From Zygnema circumcarinatum SAG 698-1b (lineage: Eukaryota > Plantae > Zygnematophyceae): a stretch of 64,000 nt of DNA. Shown piece by piece: positions 731 to 32,410 of the stretch; the first letter of the stretch is position 1, and each line of letters begins with the position of its first letter. Both the position numbers and the translations under genes were made by a program. The notes beneath the pieces were generated by a model, which had not been told where the DNA came from, made no database searches, and worked only from the letters and a program-made list of their open reading frames with translations. The stretch is taken from positions 2,418,001 to 2,482,000 of the forward strand of contig CM074815.1 of the NCBI GenBank assembly GCA_037447605.1, given 5' to 3'.

Positions 731-3219
731 GTGAGGGGATGGAATGTACATGAAAGCAGGAAGTACATGGAACATTGGAAGGAAACAAAGGGGTCCATAG
801 TTCTGTGACGTTTCACAGAACTCAGCTCTAACATCGATTATGAAATAGCAAAGTCAGCTTTGAGGGAATTCCTGCGTTTATATGGCATTCATACAGACGC
901 ATTCCAAAACCATGTGCCATGTTCTATGCAGTTGAATGAGTTGGCCTTGCTGCCTGCACGCGTTTGGGGGTAGGCAAACAAAGACATCTTCAGTGAGATG
1001 GAAGTCAGCTCGCACCTGTACACTTTCAGCCGCCGGCATTTGTAGCAGGCAGTAAAATGACCCCGCTACAAGGCCGATCAGAAACATTAGGCCAAGAACG
1101 AGCCATCGTAGAAAACTATTTTCCGGGCTGCTTTCGGATTCGTCGAAGGCCAATGTAACTGCAACATTTTCCGGATTGGCAGTTACGACCTGCACAATCT
1201 CTGTATCTGGTAGAAGGACTGTTTCGTTCGACTTGCTGACAACATAGTCGCTGGTTTGGGTAGCTGTTCCCCCCTGCAGATTGTAAACACTCGCAGTAGC
1301 CGGCATCCTTTCATCGGTGAGGGTATCTGCTACAATGCTTCCGGAATCAGAATGACTTGAAGTGACTTCCAGTACATTCAATTCTGCTGTTGCATCGTTT
1401 GAATTCGAAACAAGTACTCGCCGAAGTGCAGGCCGTCGAAGGTCGGAATGAATCCTAGACTTGAAAAGTCGTAGCAATTCGGTCCAGAAGAACTTGCCAT
1501 ATTGTGCATCGACGATGGGAGCCATTATTGAGAAGGAATGCCTGTCAAAAGCACAGCAGAAAGAGGAACGGAAACTTCATAAGTTTCTAAACTTGCTATT
1601 TCCATAATTGACAAAGCACCTTAGCACGTTTAAGCTTTTGCTGCATTCTCCTTTCGCATTCTCCTTTTCACTGTCCATCCATCCGCACAAGGCAAAACTG
1701 AACCCTCCTCACCATCGCGCTTCGCTCAAATCTGCCGAAATCTCGCCACTTGATCCGACGGCCCACAGGAGGTCCACTGGTTGCGTGCGCAAGTAAGCGA
1801 TTTCCTTTGTGCCAATTTTCTGCTCAAACCTGTCGTCGCCAAAGGTCACACGATCATGCTATTTAAGTTAGCATGTGCATATGTTTTTTAGTTAGTTAGT
1901 TAGTTAGTTTCACGTGTGTTAGACATGATCTCGAGGATGCAAGCCATGTGAGGAAGAGCCTTAGTTTATCTTTCGCTTTGTACCATACAGAAAAGAGATG
2001 CACAATTAAGCTAAGAATTTGCGATTGAAAATCTTATGTACCAACTAAGTTCATTCTTGCAAAGAACTAACTTTATGTTCTCCCTCGGCGCAATTCATTT
2101 ATTCTCGCTGCAAGTGTTCTTCACAGTCCTTCACACTATGGTCTTTATAAGCTGTTAAAAGCGTCCCTTTCTGCATCGAACTTTCCATACCCGCCTCCAT
2201 TGAGTACATTATCATTCAGTTATGCTTTTCCCCATTGAAATTAAGCATCCTTGACACTTCCTTCTGTAGTTAGGACAGTGGCGTGTTGGAAGGGAGGGGT
2301 GGGGAATTGAGGGAAAGTGAACGAAAAGAGAGGACTCGCACCTTAACGAGATTTTGCCATTTTTGGCTTCTGCAGAAGCTTCCTTCACAATCAACCTGAA
2401 CAGTTCAAACCTAAAAATTAGAACAAGAAGGTCGTCGGTTATGATGTTGAAGTGAAAGCAATTTCATTTAGGGAAAGGCTTAAAAATTCGCGTAAAGTGC
2501 AATCAGTCACAAGGGGGGACAGCTGCCTGAAGTATCTCCCACCTCTCAGCCGGCCTTGTGCATGCACTGCCGCTGCTCTTCAGAGCGACTGTCACAATTC
2601 TAGTTGTGCCACCTGGCAGCTGCTCAAGGATCAGTCCTGAACTGTCTGCCACGTGTTCCCCCGGGGCGAAGATAAGGCCCATCCATCCGCCTGTGCGGGC
2701 TTCCACTGCGAATCGAATGCTGTCATCGGTGTACTGCCAATGGACCGACAACCTGCAAACTCGACGCGGGCTGCTTGCATCAGAGGGGGGCAAGGGAGTG
2801 GCTTCAGGTGGAAAAAGGAGGGAGAGGAAAGGCCAAATGAATATATATATGGGGCACTGAAAGAGCGGAAGAAAAGAGAGAGAGAGAGAGACAGAAGGAG
2901 AGAGTAAGAGAAAGAGAGAGATACAGCGACCCCTGAGCAGCTTGCCAAAGGCCAGATCTAACGCAATTATTGAGCGTTCAGTGCCACAGGTGCAGTGCAT
3001 GGCCATGACCAGCTCTGCCTCCCTCGCTGCGCGCACTCACCTGAAGCTGCCGGTCGCCTCGTGCACGCACTGGAAGCCCTCCAACCACGAGGGGGCGCAT
3101 GGGCTCTCCTTGGCTAAAGTCAACGTTGAATGCCACATGGCAAGGAAAGCAGCCATCACGATACTGCCAGATGGAAGCCTGTGCTTTCCCCGACGAGACA
3201 TTCCCCTCTCGCGCTTCAT
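111..3219 (-). CDS. Signal peptide-DOMON-TM-DUF2993(LmeA-like) membrane protein; 3' end runs off the window start. Exons 3219-3041, 2752-2543, 2395-2342, 1829-1713, 1541-1016, 629-393, 218-111
   Basis: All junctions are GT-AG and phase-compatible (2,2,2,2,0,0). DOMON-like motifs LSVHWQY...IRFAVEARTGGWMGLIF and QPVDLLWAVG...RWH; hydrophobic segment WLVLGLMFLIGLVAGSFYCLL; C-terminal IVGGLLSNILGRLVKEK|LESAENVQVKVGGDSFLLLSGKTTGF matches the two DUF2993-like paralogs at 33-38 kb, including an identical 108-nt exon. Confidence 0.7.
651..729. repeat. Poly-G run flanking a 10-N assembly gap (N at 682-691); intronic in the model above
   Basis: Homopolymer G with Ns seen directly; it produces the spurious poly-Pro ORFs in the track. 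Confidence 0.9.
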
Positions 3220-25301: not shown

Positions 25302-28097
25302 TCATCTTCGCCCAAAAGCAGTACAACATCCACCTCGGTTAACAACAGATCTCAAAGGAGGAGTGAGTCCCTCCCTGGAAAGCCTTTGGGAGTTCGAACT
25401 TGAGGAGAACGCACAAGAGAGCGGGAGGGTAATTGGAAAGGGCAGTTTGCATCTTAACCGCCCTTTACGTGGATGCAGACTGTATGTGGAGGTCCATCGA
25501 GACTGGTAGATCATTTTATGGTGTGAGTGAAAACTGAACTGCGGCGTGCTCTCATCAGCCGTAGTTGATGCAATGCTTAACTCGCTGTCTAGTGAAGAGC
25601 TGGAATAGCTGCCAGACCCGTTACTGTACGACGAGTTGCGCACAACTGTTGCTGCCGGCTGACTTGGTGGAAGTAGCTGACAGTCATACAGATGATCCGC
25701 AAACCACAGCTCGGGTGAAACAAGAGCAGGAGAGTATCTCGATCGACTCGAAGCTGTGGAGGGATGGTTGCTCGATCGGGCAAAATCTGTAAGGCGGTCA
25801 GAAAGGGTGCCTTCTTCTTGCTCTGATAAGGACGGATAAGAGGACTGCGTGTAACTATAGGCAGGCTGGCAGTTCCACTTGATCCACGGATGTTCTGCAT
25901 TGGCACATGCTGGAAATGAGGCGTGAACATAAAACAGGAGAAAAGCAATTTGCGACTCTAATATGAGAAACTTTCCTTAAGGAGGGTGCAGAAATTCACC
26001 TTTGGCTTCCTCAGGCGTGATTCTTTTCACCGGGTCTAAGCAGAGCATTAGGCTGACGAGATCCTTTGCCTCCGCTGAGATGTAGCGCCACGGCCCCGAT
26101 TCCAAGTCAAAAATACCTGCCTTGATTTTTACAAAAATGGCGTTCCTTGTCTCTGCCCAGAACGGCGGCACTCCACATAGAAGTATGTAGAGGATGACTC
26201 CCAGACTCCACACATCCGCCTCGCGGCCGTACGATCGGCGGAGGACCTCCGGTGCGACGTAGTACCTTCAGATCAACAAAATGGCATGGGCCGCCGGTAA
26301 GTTCAGCACTTGTGCGCTGAAAATAATCCTTCTCAAACGATGCGCAGAGCTTGTGATCCGTTGACTGGAGCTAAATGTGACGGGAAAACTCGGGAACAGA
26401 TCAAGAAGAGATGAGAGTAATGTTAACTTAAATCTAAACTAATCGACAAATACAACGAAAAGACATGGACATGGTAAACATACGGAGTACCCACTGCCTG
26501 GTGCAGCTTCACTCCTTTCTTGAGCAACGCGGCCTGCCCAAAGTCCACCACTTTGATGGCGGAGTTGGAGGTGGGGGACATCATGAGGATGTTCTCCGGC
26601 TTCAAGTCGCGGTGCACTACGCCCTTTGCGTGGCAGTACTGCACGACGGAGAGGAGCTGCCGGCACAGCGCGGCGGCCTCCTTTTCTGAAAACTGCTTCC
26701 GTTGCTTGATGTGGCCGAGCAGATCTCCGCCTTCGCAGGGCTCCATGATAATGTGGACATTCTGATGATAATTCACCCCAAAGCAAAGCTCATCCGTAAA
26801 TCACTGAGTATATTAGCATTGCATACTCCGCTGGTAAATTAAAAAGGTGTTCCCACCAAACAATGCCTGCTTATGGGCAGGCATGGCATGGCTTACATAC
26901 AGGGCTGGAAACCCATCTGAAGACTCATTTTCCATTGAAGTCGCAGTTATTAAGATCAATTAGCTGCTAAGATTGGATAATAGCCCGTCAAGGTCAAAAA
27001 AATATAAAGTTCAAAAGATTGAGAGGGGGGAAGGTCAAGCCTTATTCTGTCAATCAAGGACTTTGGTTATTTTTTTCTTGCGATGATTAGCTAGCCGATC
27101 AATACTTGAGTATGTAGCTGCCCAGTTTATCGACGGTGCCTTCTACTCGAATTCCTGCCAACGCCGTTGTACTGTTGACTCTCTTAACATAGTTTACTTC
27201 TTGACCATGATCAGCCTCACACGTATTCGAACTACCAGAAAGAATCATGTAAAGGATTTTAAGAGCAAACTAACCAGTACTTACATGTATCCATCTTCCC
27301 ACCAATCGGATACCAATATTACATGATTGCCACGTTTTTCATGTTCCATACTTGGCATCCTAAGCGATCGTTTCTTATTCCTAACGTCACGCATACAACG
27401 TGATCGTCTGAACACTTGTTACTCCTGGACTCCTCGTTGATTGCTGCCAAGTTCTAGGCTCAGAATCACTTGACGCGCGACAAATCGTCTAGAACAAATC
27501 GAGCATCGCCATGTGAATCACAAAACGGCCGTTCCCCTCCCGCATGCATAATGACACACTTGCTCACCCAGCCATTCATTCCAGCGACCCAAGCTCAAGG
27601 CCATGGCGTACAGGCTGCTTCCCCACCTTCTCGTCTTCCATCACCGCCTTCATCCTCGCCACGCCGCCATGCCTCCTCACCCGCCTCATGGCTCGCACCT
27701 CCGCGCGCACCGCCGCAACGTCGCGCGGTCCGCTGAGGTCGGCCTTCCGGAGCGTCTTGCAGGCGAAGACCTCGCCCGTCCTGCGGCTCGTGCAGCGCCG
27801 CACCACTCCCGACATCCCCTCGCCGAGCTGCCTCCCCAGCACGTACTCGTCCTCTACGCTGCTGTACGGAATGCCCAGAACGCGAGGTGTCAGCCGGAAC
27901 GCCTCCGCCGACTCAGCGATAATGAGCGGAGTCTGGAGTGGCACCATGCGGACGCCCTCCTCGTGCAGGCGCCTGCTCCGACGGTGCCGCCCGTGACTGC
28001 CCGGCAGCCCGGCAGCAGCCATGGCTGCGGCCCGCGGGTCTTTGCGGAGTAGGGCCGTGTTTGGTCGCGCAGGAGAGCCAAGGCGGCGGTCCACCAT
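25302..28097 (-). CDS. PEPRK-like kinase, copy D. Exons 28097-27627, 26761-26484, 26265-26000, 25894-25302
   Basis: [35 protein letters not shown]; same intron positions as the other copies. Confidence 0.92.
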
Positions 28098-28911
28098 GGA
28101 CGAAGGGTGCGTGGAAGGCGAGAGTGACGAGGCAGCGCAGCGCAGGGTGGAAGGAGGCCCGGCAATCCCTCCCTCCCTTCCTTCTCTCCTCCCTCTCCTT
28201 TCCTCTCGTCTCGTCTCCTCTCCTCTCCTCTCCTCTCCTCTCCTCCCTCTCCTCTCCTCTCCTCTCCTCTCCTCTCCTGGCGATTTGGCGAGTGGCGCCT
28301 CGGCTGGCCGCCAGTGGGTGGCTGGCGCCTGGCGGGCGGCCCGGGGGGAGGCAGGGAGGGAGGGAGGGAGGTTGGGAGGGAGGGAGGGAGGGAGGGAGGG
28401 AGGGCGAGTGGCGGCCCGCAGCGGCGCGATCCGCGAACCACGTGGAACCGTTTTTCGCGTGGCAGCGCGGCATTGGTCCCTGCCGCCCTCATTGACCGCG
28501 CTCGTGCGGAGCGGTCGCTGAAAAGTGCGCGCGAGATCTGCCGGGCCGCAAAGCGACAAACACGCCTGGTGCTTGCCGACCTACGCGAACAGCTAGGCAT
28601 GTCGGCCACTTGCGCGTACGGCCGGGCGGGCGGGGGAATTGGTTACAGTACTGATCGCGGCCGCTACGCAACGGGTCGCACACGTGGCAGGCGCGGGTCG
28701 CGCCGCGTGGCACGGGCGAGATCTCCCGCGGTCCGGCCGTTGCGTGGGCTGACTTGGCAGCGAGGGGAGCGGTCAGCGCCAGGGTGGCAGCGCGCGAGTG
28801 CCAGCGTGGCGGCCCGCCGGGGGGTGGGGGGGGTGGGGGGCTCGCCGAACAGGGCGGACCGTTGGACCAACCATTGGCTGCCTGCGACCATTCGTTTGCA
28901 ACCCAGCCAAC

Positions 28912-28987
28912 CATTGATGTGGTTGTCAATCATTGACGTGGTTGCCAACCATTGACGTGGTTGCCAACCATTGACGTGGTTGCCAGC
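28912..28987. repeat. 4 x 19-bp tandem repeat CATTGACGTGGTTGCCAAC in the bidirectional promoter between kinase D and the Gdown1-like gene
   Basis: Units at 28912, 28931, 28950 and 28969; three carry TGACGTGG, a bZIP Hex/ABRE-type motif. Confidence 0.85.
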
Positions 28988-29292
28988 CGTTGACCAATGG
29001 CGTAAGTCCGCGGCCAAAGGCCGGGCGGTTAGGACCAAGCTTAGGCTGCACGCAGGCCCCGCCCGCGTTAGATTCCCGGGCGGGAAACACGGGGCGCGAC
29101 CAAGTGGGCCCTTTGGCTGAGGCGAGGGCGGGCGGGTGGCGCCACTCACTGCTCGGCCGGGTCCATGCGCGCTCGCTCTGTCTCGACCCATCGCGACCGT
29201 CCGCTGCGCGCTAGCATCCGACGGCCCTGGAGTTGCCAACCGTCCGAGGGGGCGCTCGGCCCAGCCCGTCCGCCCGTCAGCTCCGGGCGGCC

Positions 29293-31718
29293 ATGGCTGC
29301 TGGAGAGCGCTCGGCGAGCCTCTCTGCGCGGGGCGGCCTCCTCTCTAGCATCCGCAAGCAGCAGGTAGGCACCCATGTCGGCCCGGTGCGCACGCTTGCC
29401 GGTACTGCTAAGCTTTGACAGAACAGACAGATTGAAGCTGAGCTGTCGGGGTCCGCAGCGCGTCCTGGCCTTAGGGTTGCCAGAGATTCGATACGCGCTT
29501 GTTTGGAAAAGTCTGCAAGGGGCTCTCAGGTAGAGAGCTTGTCTGCAAATCATAGGAGGAGATTGAGAAGCAGAGAGATGCTGCAAGCTAAACCTAATCT
29601 CAGAGATTTTAGAAACGCGGTGATGCGTGTGGGTACATGACGACGACTTTGATTCACACTCTACGTCAGCAACCTAAAATCCAACCCTAATGAAGGATAT
29701 CATTCCTTAAGTTTTAAGGTTAATCGTCCGCTTAGTCCTTCGCTGAAATTCGATGATGTTTTTGTGCCCTTGTGTCGTAGGACCTCCTTGCACGGGTGCG
29801 GTCAGGCGAGCTGAAACTTCCAGATGGCGGCGCAAAGGTCGAGGCAAAATTGCTGGAGATGGAGGCCGCCTTGGAGCGCTTGAACAATGCGAAAGGCGCT
29901 CTCAGAGATAAGGCGGAGGGCGACGGAGAGGAGCAGCCAGACTCGGCCATGGGGGCAGCGGTGGAGAGTGAGGGGCGGTCGCCGCAGGATGCGCCAGTGA
30001 GTCTGCATCGTGGTAGTACAATCTGCTGCCAATTTCTCACTCTAGAAAGTCGATTTATTTGTTGATTTGGATAACTGATGCTGGCGTGCATCTGCTAAAT
30101 AAGTTTGATGAACTGAAGAGGTGATGTTGGCCCTCCGATAGTGCAAACGAACACCGTTTCCTATTGTCACTTTGCAGTTTATTGCAGGTGTCCGCAGGAT
30201 CCACTGTTGCAAAAATCAGCAAATGCTGACTGTGCCATTGAACGCGTATTCAATTACTGTAGCACGAGTTTAAGCAGCTCGTTTCTCTCCGGTAGAGGCC
30301 CTGTGCTTTTCTGACTTGTCTGGTCGTTAAATAGTGCTCAGGAACTGGGAATGCTTCGTGGATTAGCTTAGTGACTGTCCTGGCTTTTGTGTGTTTAATT
30401 TTCAAATGGCTTGACTTGACCAGTTTCCTTCTCGTCTGTATGCGCTTTGCTATACAGCTGGAAAGGCTACTCCAACCTTTCCTTCTTCTCTCCCTCCCGA
30501 TGCTCGGCGCATTTTGGAATTACGGAGATTAGCAGAGAAAGAGACAGTTCAGGACGAAGATATCTCTCCACTGCGGCCGAAGCCGGGAGGGCTTTACCGA
30601 GAGAGGAACGGCATGCTGGAGCCCGCAGTAGGGCGAATCTCGAGAGAAGCTGCAGCTCGTGCACGCAGGAAGGCAGAAAAGGAAATCGCTGAGGAGGTGG
30701 ATGCCCAGGCAGACCAACTCGCTTCTCTGCGCTTAGATGGCGATGCTCCTGCCAGCCAGGAGATGACTGCCACAGCGGGACTGGGGGATGGGAGGGCTGC
30801 CTCAAAGGGCGATGAGGAAGGGTGGAAAGACGAAGCGATTGAGACAGGGCCCAGGGTGGTCCCGGGACATCGGAGTGTGAAGTTGATCTCTGTGGAGGAA
30901 GCAGCAGAGTGGGAGAAGCAACATGAGCGTGCAGTCAAGGTGAGGGAGCTTTTGTGCTGTGCAGTTAAGCACACATACATACGTGAAATGTGCATGGCTC
31001 ATAAAGCACCGGCATAATGAAAGGTGTAGACTTATGCTTCCCTTTCGATTACTGGACAACCTATCTTGTCCTGGATGAGAGAAGAGTAGAGAGAGCATCT
31101 GCCACTTGAATCAACTTTGTGGTCCCGATTGGTTGGCAAAAAGTCAGAAAGCAATGCACCGTCTGAGAATCATTAGAAGTTGAGAGAGAATACTTAAATG
31201 TAGCGCAGTTTACTGTGAAGTGAGGTGTGAGATGGCCTCGCTGATCCGACTGCCTGACGAGAAGTGTGTAGCTTCAGTTTGCTAACAGGGTCAGTGCTTT
31301 CCGACTGTCGGCTCCCACCGGCAGGTTTCTTCCAATGTGAATTTCGCTTGGAAGGCACATGCAGCCTGCTGAGTTATCTTGCTTAGGCCTGCATGAGCAT
31401 CATCTCTCTCTATATTGCATATGATGCCACCTTTTCTCTTCTCTGGATATTGACAAATTTCGTTTAGAAAAATATTTCAGCTTTCTGGTCGATTTCCAAC
31501 TTTCTTGCTGTGTTGCTGTTCTACAGGCCCACGAAGAAAAGATTTTTGCTCGGCACTTGGCTGCCCAGGCCGGCTCAAGAGGGGACACACGCGAATTCTC
31601 GGTTTGGGAGGGACGGAAGGTTGCAGAGGTGGGGGAGAGCAGTGACGAGGATGAGGAGTCCACCTCCGACGGTGAGGGAGACGAGCTTGAACCTGATGAC
31701 GATGCGAACGAGAGGTGA
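29293..31718 (+). CDS. Gdown1/GRINL1A (POLR2M, GCOM2-domain)-like protein. Exons 29293-29364, 29781-~29967/29996, 30458-30939, 31527-31718 (one internal junction unresolved)
   Basis: N-terminal LSSIRKQQ|DLLARVRSGELKLPDGGAKVEAKLLEMEAALE and C-terminal VKLISVEEAAEWEKQHERAVK|AHEEKIFARHLAAQ plus an acidic tail. These parallel the two conserved blocks of animal Gdown1 as I recall them (RQERLL...KLPDKGKKI; QLLSIEESLALQKQQ...KLAAQKLA). Confidence 0.65.
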
Positions 31719-31840
31719 CACCAGCCCTGGCGACCATGGAAGGTTTTGTGTCCAGTGCTGCCGAAGAAAGGAAGGGGAAGAAGAGTGGCCGCAGCCGGGA
31801 ATTGGACGGGCCTCATAATGGCATTAGGGCACGCCGCTCG

Positions 31841-31933
31841 CTGTGCGCCAAACGTTGCATCCGCGTGCGCTGTGCGTCAAACGTTGCATCCGCGTACGCT
31901 GTGCGTCAAACGTTGCATCCGCGTGCGCTATGC
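31841..31933. repeat. 3 x 29-bp tandem repeat CTGTGCGTCAAACGTTGCATCCGCGTRCG
   Basis: Units at 31841, 31870 and 31899 plus a partial unit; contiguous, no spacers. Confidence 0.9.
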
Positions 31934-32359
31934 CGTGCTCTCGCAAGAAATTCCGAACGCGCTCCACAGAACTTTTGTGCAGCCCTGTGGTCACAGCGAC
32001 CCTGAGAACGAACAAAAGTGTTATGTTGTGGTGTGGTGCCTCAACCCATGTAAAAGGAAGATGACGGAATGCAGTGCTGAACCAAGTGCTGCATGAGTCG
32101 TTGTGCCCGTGACAATTTGCAGCATTAGGGCTTGTCAAACTTGAAAAACTACCACTCTTTGAAAATCAATTATCCTACTTGGGCGTGTCACCCGTTGGCA
32201 CTGACCTTCGAGATTTATTTCAAACCAGTAATTTCGGATTTTGCCTTCACTACTTATTTCCGGGGAATGCATGTACCAACCTTTGACGAGCGGCTCTTAA
32301 AATAGCCGTTGGGGCCCGGAACTGGATGGCACAACCCGCCGGCCGAGTCTGGATCGGAT

Positions 32360-32410
32360 GGACGGACAACGGACGGACGGACGGACGGACGGACGGACGG
32401 ACGGACGGAC
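32360..32410. repeat. (GGAC)n microsatellite (a second tract at ~38600-38652)
   Basis: Seen directly. Confidence 0.85.

Follow-up and report, generated by a model that had tools for sequence, protein, structure and literature searches.

Positions 29293 to 31718 of the stretch analysed in this work (called the window below: 64,000 nucleotides of contig CM074815.1 of the streptophyte alga Zygnema circumcarinatum SAG 698-1b, numbered from its first letter) hold a four-exon gene on the + strand which is real and transcribed, and which, judging from the likeness of its protein to human GDOWN1, probably encodes a distant member of the Gdown1 (POLR2M/GRINL1A, Pfam GCOM2) family of RNA polymerase II (Pol II) companions. 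The protein matches two of the three human GDOWN1 regions that have been seen on Pol II. In papers published from 2013 to 2026, Gdown1 is regarded as specific to metazoans and said to be lacking in yeast and worms, and our literature searches returned no paper on a Gdown1 of plants or algae. The family itself is already known and the databases hint at plant members, so that the novelty would lie in the unexpected lineage in which both end modules occur together.

Likeness of the two protein ends to human GDOWN1

The spliced protein was compared with three segments of human GDOWN1 (residues 8-87, 224-262 and 293-368), verified in the PDB sequence library at 100% identity to chain 28jc_M/9t5h (368 amino acids). 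The comparisons were targeted, with all HMMER filters off and each counting as a single test. The same chain bears out the human blocks that a preliminary description of the locus, made from its letters only, had quoted. Three stretches of the gene are concerned:

29341..29873, + strand, split by intron 1: N-terminal module, residues 17-55, similar to the human RPB10/RPB3-binding region (RBR-like), ungapped to human GDOWN1 24-62
30496..30525, + strand: central block PDARRILELR, residues 115-124, whose RILELRR stretch the preliminary description set against EVLEMR, part of PHYMEVLEMR in the human external-binding region
30868..31670, + strand, split by intron 3: C-terminal module, residues 239-310, similar to the human RPB2-protrusion-binding region (PBR-like), aligned to human GDOWN1 298-366

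The C-terminal module is made of KLISVEE (residues 243-249), a helix that runs across the exon 3/4 junction at K262|A263, and an acidic Ser/Asp/Glu tail, such that the LLSIEE-type core, the long helix and the acidic end of Gdown1 are all present, and the junction inside them is confirmed by RNA. Aligned with human 298-366 it reaches a Smith-Waterman (SW) score of 73 against a shuffle mean of 34-37, a score attained by at most 1 of 3000 shuffles, including those in which shuffling was confined to 12-residue blocks, and phmmer gives it 12.0 bits (P 7.5e-6). The preliminary description had claimed that its last block aligns without gaps through a splice junction. This holds: the alignment is ungapped over its first 36 positions, across the exon 3/4 junction that is spanned by the stretch KLISVEE...KIFARHLA (residues 243-274) and that is found in the RNA of four runs out of four. 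L244/I245 pair with human L303/L304, which are required for inhibition and lie in the segment 290-344 resolved on the RPB2 protrusion (PMC13443923).

At the other end, residues 17-55 align without a gap to human 24-62, with an SW score of 50-52 against a shuffle mean of 23-30; none of 3000 shuffles of the 35-residue segment reached this score, and one of 3000 tied with it for the 80-residue segment (phmmer 6.9 bits, P 2.7e-4). Over sets of 2000-3000 shuffles, neither end match was outscored. LPDGG (residues 37-41; 29817-29831) pairs with human LPDKG 44-48, with L37, P38, D39 and G41 facing L44, P45, D46 and G48; the fourth residue is G in the alga, whereas the family motif has K/R. In Gdown1 the LPD(K/R)G motif near residue 45 is flanked by helices, and the algal motif likewise sits in a modelled helix-loop-helix. 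The human counterpart, residues 19-73 with LPDKG and L44, is resolved on RPB10/RPB3 in the 2026 structure by cryo-electron microscopy (cryo-EM) (PMC13443923).

In that structure, exactly three parts of GDOWN1 are resolved on Pol II: 19-73, 224-255 and 290-344 (PMC13443923). The two human segments matched here are not arbitrary ones, because both are Pol II contact regions. The general layout agrees as well. The helix, LPDxG loop and helix are found at the same offset from the start (17-55 in the alga versus 24-62 in human), and the (K/Q)L(I/L)S(V/I)EE core, the long helix and the acidic Ser/Asp/Glu end close both proteins (239-310 versus 298-366). Both matches are equally far from the protein termini in the two species, and the chains, of 325 and 368 amino acids respectively, are both mostly disordered. 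In a six-frame control over 93,000 residues of open frames in the window, the gene's own exons rank top for both human segments, with the best unrelated frames scoring 39 for the N-terminal segment and 38 for the C-terminal one. The joint pairwise probability of the two end matches is about 2e-9, if they are independent.

The gene and its productive transcript

The frame was defined with RNA contigs assembled from four public runs of this alga (X1, X2, X3 and X7) and placed on 29100-32100. It opens at ATG 29293 and closes with the stop ending at 31718, and its coding sequence of 978 nt for 325 amino acids is distributed over four exons:

29293..29364, + strand: exon 1, coding part, 24 codons from the first in-frame ATG (context gccATGg), ending ...IRKQQ before donor GT 29365
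29781..30012, + strand: exon 2, 232 nt, encoding DLLARVRSGELKLPDGGAKVE... plus a disordered acidic linker, donor GT 30013
30458..30939, + strand: exon 3, 482 nt, phase 1, encoding the central helix (PDARRILELRRLAEKE) and a second helix, long and charged, besides a disordered stretch and the first part of the C-terminal helix
31527..31718, + strand: exon 4, coding part, encoding AHEEKIFARHLAAQ..., then the Ser/Asp/Glu tail, stop TGA 31716-31718
31719..32100, + strand: 3′ untranslated region (UTR), extending at least to 32086-32100, with contigs spanning 31525-32100 at full depth in all four runs

All three introns are GT..AG. Intron 1 (29365-29780) is removed by the joint 29364>29781 in runs X3 and X7, and intron 3 (30940-31526) by the joint 30939>31527 in all four. 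Intron 2 has one acceptor (AG 30456-30457) and two donors, of which GT 30013 is the productive one, because only with this donor is the reading frame restored. The preliminary description had read a spliced open reading frame with all its quoted blocks at this place and had suggested RNA-seq for the exon 2-3 junction. The blocks are indeed there (residues 22-55, 118-124 and 243-274, and the acidic tail), the transcripts of the four runs join the proposed exons, and the junction is fixed at donor 30013 and acceptor 30456-30457 by the joint 30012>30458 in X2, X3 and X7. Two other gene models, one with donor 29997 and acceptor 30466 and one with donor 29968 and acceptor 30458, are ruled out by the RNA joints.

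The encoded protein is charged and mostly disordered, with a composition rich in Ala, Glu, Arg, Gly and Asp. Single-sequence AlphaFold2 (AF2) models exon 2 as a short helix, the LPDGG loop and a long helix, with a predicted local distance difference test (pLDDT) above 90 over exon-2 residues 1-40. In exon 3 it places helices at exon-3 residues 13-28, 62-93 and 145-159, which fall over PDARRILELRRLAEKE, ISREAAARARRKAEKEIAEEVDAQADQLASL and SVEEAAEWEKQHERAVK, the last of them running on into exon 4, and the stretches between them are modelled at low confidence. Fold searches with the exon-2 model (AlphaFold clusters, PDB and ESM Atlas) returned generic helices only.

Neighbours in the ESM Atlas

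A second line of evidence comes from the ESM Atlas feature search, which is free of alignment. For exon 2, its first-ranked neighbour is a PF15328 GCOM2 cluster made mostly of Streptophyta (score 0.85, with 187 of 256 features shared), six GCOM2 clusters are found in the top seven together with one unnamed Euglenozoa cluster, and the score then drops to 0.54. The fused exon 2-3 of the metagenomic relative described below gives nearly the same picture, with the Euglenozoa cluster at 0.84, six GCOM2 clusters from 0.79, and then 0.54. Exon 3 alone has no GCOM2 neighbour in this search. The convergence on GCOM2 of two sequences that are only 36% identical, with a big gap to the next family, seems hard to credit to chance.

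The Streptophyta GCOM2 cluster has 130 members, a representative of 93 amino acids, and PF15328 in 55% of its proteins; some Streptophyta proteins thus already bear a GCOM2 tag from automatic annotation. It comes from the same broad lineage as the window protein and presumably carries the same N-terminal LPDxG module, but its short representative may be without the C-terminal module, the likeness between the two is one of language-model features only, and the window protein itself, unlike the tagged cluster, falls below Pfam detection of GCOM2. The unnamed cluster of 57 proteins, mostly of Euglenozoa (210 amino acids), ranks first or second for both queries, and may be an unrecognised branch of the GCOM2 family in a very distant lineage.

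A diverged relative from a metagenome

Used as the query in an exhaustive search of 1.84 billion representatives, exon 3 retrieved a protein (P0002) that is 42% identical to this exon over residues 15-92 (E 1.3e-4) and that lies on a 2347-bp ENA metagenome scaffold (L001). The stored P0002 is a mis-called partial model, which leaves out the LPDGG region and continues into intron 3. Read in all frames, the scaffold contains an exon 1, its start lost in a scaffold gap, that ends ...IRKQK and is followed by GT; a fused exon 2-3 that starts DLLNLVKSGRLRLPDGGTKVE, passes through RFLELSR and ends QLISVKE...ERSK, again followed by GT; and a last exon with ...EDQILMRSRM..., a Ser/Asp tail and a stop. 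Introns 1 and 3 interrupt both genes at the same positions, and intron 2 is absent from the relative, where exons 2 and 3 are fused.

Identity between the two proteins is 36% over 271 aligned positions, and the conserved positions cluster in the N- and C-terminal motifs, the central block and the tail, the elements kept being IRKQ|DLL...LPDGG.KVE, R.LEL.R, QLISV.E and the acidic tail. A relative this diverged with the same motifs and intron positions means that the window gene belongs to a conserved gene family, so it is not a one-off open frame. Another rank of the exhaustive search, P0001 (5332 amino acids, repetitive), was dismissed as low-complexity, since it matches the charged helix only, and does so in 17 places. 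No relatives besides P0002 were found by word-indexed protein searches with exon 3 plus read-through, P0002 and the L001 exon 2-3, and no further members by metagenome scans with the protein or with the degenerate pattern SG.L.LPDGG.K(V/I)(D/E).

Between its N-terminal motif and its central block, the relative also has a second stretch resembling LLSIEESLAL, IPSKRLSFESSLAL (1217-1258 of L001, fused-exon residues 72-85). Against human 299-312 it outscores the relative's own QLISVKE, and nothing comparable is found at this place in the window protein.

Kinship or coincidence

The preliminary description took the gene for a probable Gdown1 homolog in which all blocks of the human protein occur in the same order. 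Its part concerning the ends has stood, with the N-terminal and C-terminal matches in place (P 2.7e-4 and 7.5e-6) and GCOM2 language-model neighbours, one of them also dominated by Streptophyta. Its part concerning the middle has found no support, and neither Pfam nor the phmmer searches of PDB sequences recovered the family.

Several results weigh against kinship. The central block, in which RILELRR (residues 118-124) had been set against human EVLEMR, is at chance level: PDARRILELR is the best local alignment within human 224-262 and a helix is predicted there by AF2, but its SW score of 22 compares with a shuffle mean of 23, about two thirds of the shuffles reach 22, HMMER finds no match, and the likeness is not significant. 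A two-sequence profile of the window protein and its metagenomic relative gives -3.2 bits on the central region; the relative keeps the block as RFLELSR. The central external-binding region of human GDOWN1, of which 224-255 is resolved on the RPB2 external and protrusion domains as helix alpha-4 (PMC13443923), is not recognisably similar in the window protein. At the N-terminus, the human Pol II contacts R30 and R33 pair with Q23 and L26 and are not kept. Shuffle statistics are lenient on charged helices, which is what both matched regions are, and ESM Atlas scores below 0.9 count as leads only. The relative itself is weakly similar to human GDOWN1 (P 0.007 and 0.011), the two-sequence profile scores below the window protein alone, and the search of 1.84 billion representatives yielded this one true relative only.

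To these points are added the profile searches. The HMMER comparison with Pfam GCOM2 (PF15328) that the preliminary description had proposed gave no match at E up to 10 for exons 1-4, for the 47-residue N-terminal and 48-residue C-terminal junction pieces, for P0002 or for the pieces of L001, and the exons hold no Pfam domain of any kind. The gathering score of GCOM2 is 27 bits, and as a positive control human 28-62, of 35 residues, scores 64.2 bits on profile positions 2-36 of 214. Human 293-340, however, matches no Pfam family: the GCOM2 model spans the N-terminal and central parts of Gdown1 only and is tuned to animals. A C-terminal GCOM2 hit, whose absence was to speak against the homology according to the preliminary description, can therefore be obtained by no protein, and this absence is of no use as an argument. 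Searches of PDB sequences by phmmer with the exon pieces did not reach GDOWN1 either, and the matches that they gave (a VIPP1-like protein, the neck repeats of DC-SIGNR, Rpb1 at E 1.5 and L32e) are noise.

Could the gene then encode an unrelated protein, lineage-restricted, disordered, and nuclear or cytoplasmic, that owes its likeness to Gdown1 to chance, by way of amphipathic, charged helices together with an acidic tail and a motif of five residues? The lack of any Pfam, PDB-sequence or fold-search match would fit such a protein, as would the chance level of the central block, the marginal similarity of the metagenomic relative to the human protein, the single relative obtained from very large searches, and a composition rich in A, E, R, G and D that favours spurious helix-helix alignments. 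Against this stand two matches that each lie at the expected end of the protein and follow each other in the expected order, with the small joint probability given above, block shuffles that keep the composition and almost never reach the observed scores, and the six GCOM2 clusters in the top seven for two diverged sequences, with no other family close. We consider a chance likeness unlikely on this balance, and kinship to animal Gdown1 probable.

Less likely still is that the gene encodes some other Pol II-associated protein which shares the LPDxG short linear motif only, by convergence or motif sharing and with no common Gdown1 ancestor. There is a precedent in the helicase TTF2, which shares a conserved LPDKG with Gdown1; its motif has been proposed to dock at the Pol II site used by the N-terminus of Gdown1, in competition with it (PMC4007455). 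The strongest Atlas signal does come from the pieces that bear LPDxG, exon 3 alone being without a GCOM2 neighbour. But the stronger of the two matches is the C-terminal one (12.0 bits), which is without LPDxG and takes the likeness beyond the short motif to the C-terminal block and tail, and which contains the LL(I)S(V/I)EE core with the leucines on which inhibition depends in human (PMC13443923). Gdown1 is also matched in size, in the order of the motifs from N to C and in the acidic end, and whilst TTF2 is a large ATP-dependent helicase of the SNF2 family, the window protein has 325 amino acids, no helicase or other Pfam domain, and a second match to the Gdown1 C-terminus.

Possible role and origin

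If the gene is indeed a member of the Gdown1 family, its N-terminal module (helix, LPDGG loop, helix) would be the counterpart of the human region that binds RPB10/RPB3, and its C-terminal module (KLISVEE, amphipathic helix, acidic tail) that of the region that binds the RPB2 protrusion. By analogy with the human structure, the protein could wrap Pol II, with one module on RPB10/RPB3, the other on the RPB2 protrusion, and a long flexible linker between them. In this position it would occupy the surface of Pol II that is used by TFIIF, and might act as a companion in Pol II assembly/import, as a brake on TFIIF-dependent initiation, or as both. Animal Gdown1, the extra subunit of Pol II(G), binds the polymerase tightly and blocks TFIIF, a block that Mediator relieves. 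Pol II binding, together with any effect on TFIIF or Mediator, is what we infer from the human protein, and the same applies to the ancient Pol II(G) regulator of the preliminary description.

As to the age of the family, the results are compatible with an ancient eukaryotic companion of Pol II that was kept in the green lineage, with this alga and the Streptophyta GCOM2 cluster as its members there, and perhaps in Euglenozoa, where the unnamed cluster is the lead, and lost in yeast and worms, in which case Gdown1 would not be an animal invention; we put this forward tentatively, with the odds slightly against it. Models of Mediator dependence, of the control of promoter-proximal pausing and of the cytoplasmic assembly of Pol II treat Gdown1 as an animal addition. 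A green-algal relative with the full architecture, from an alga near the land plants, would push the origin of Gdown1 back by more than 1 billion years, and would provide plant transcription research with a candidate sub-stoichiometric Pol II subunit that was never looked for. Plants and their algal relatives might then have a Pol II(G)-like form of the enzyme, or a Gdown1-assisted step of Pol II assembly/import. This significance is tempered by the GCOM2 tags that some Streptophyta proteins already carry, and the evidence presented here is at the level of sequence.

Alternative transcripts

The RNA contigs also reveal other forms of the transcript, which concern the following two segments:

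29418..29529, + strand: alternative 5′ exon within intron 1, donor GT 29530, joint 29529>29781 in X1 only (depth 150.7)
29997..30012, + strand: segment between the alternative and the productive donor of intron 2, 16 nt, delimited by RNA joints

The alternative donor of intron 2, GT 29997, lies 16 nt upstream of the productive one and is used by the joint 29996>30458 in X1 (depth 150.7) and X7 (44.9). On translation it leads to a frameshift and a stop after 120 codons; it forms the sole intron 2 joint in X1 and the stronger of two in X7. Transcripts with the 29418-29529 first exon are without ATG 29293, and contigs of X2, X3 and X7 read through intron 1 unspliced. A large share of the transcript output, between donor 29997, the alternative first exon and the retained intron 1, is hence seemingly unproductive, and these isoforms may reflect regulated unproductive splicing.

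One contig of X3 begins at 29157 and carries 29 extra 5′ letters that are found nowhere in the 64-kb window. Their source could be a 5′ exon farther away, a spliced leader or a chimeric assembly. In transcripts starting near 29157 there is an ATG at 29165 that is out of frame and weak in context, and its frame overlaps the main start.

Flanking region and repeats

Upstream, on the - strand at 27576-28556, lies an open frame in which a protein-kinase domain begins (36 bits to Pfam Pkinase, over profile positions 1-71). This kinase gene stands head-to-head with the gene described here, on the opposite strand, and the region between them is therefore a divergent promoter region common to both. 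It contains, at 28906-28994, 4.7 copies of a 19-bp tandem repeat with the unit GCCAACCATTGACGTGGTT, each unit of which carries the ACGT-core sequence TGACGTGG, a core that we take to be of the kind bound by plant bZIP factors. A second tandem repeat, of 29 bp, was found by Tandem Repeats Finder within the 3′ UTR at 31839-31933 (3.3 copies, 93% matches), and its unit holds the palindrome AACGTT. Microsatellites of the types (CTCTC)n, (GGGA)n and (CGGA)n are present on both sides of the gene, at 28184-28404 and 32355-32410.

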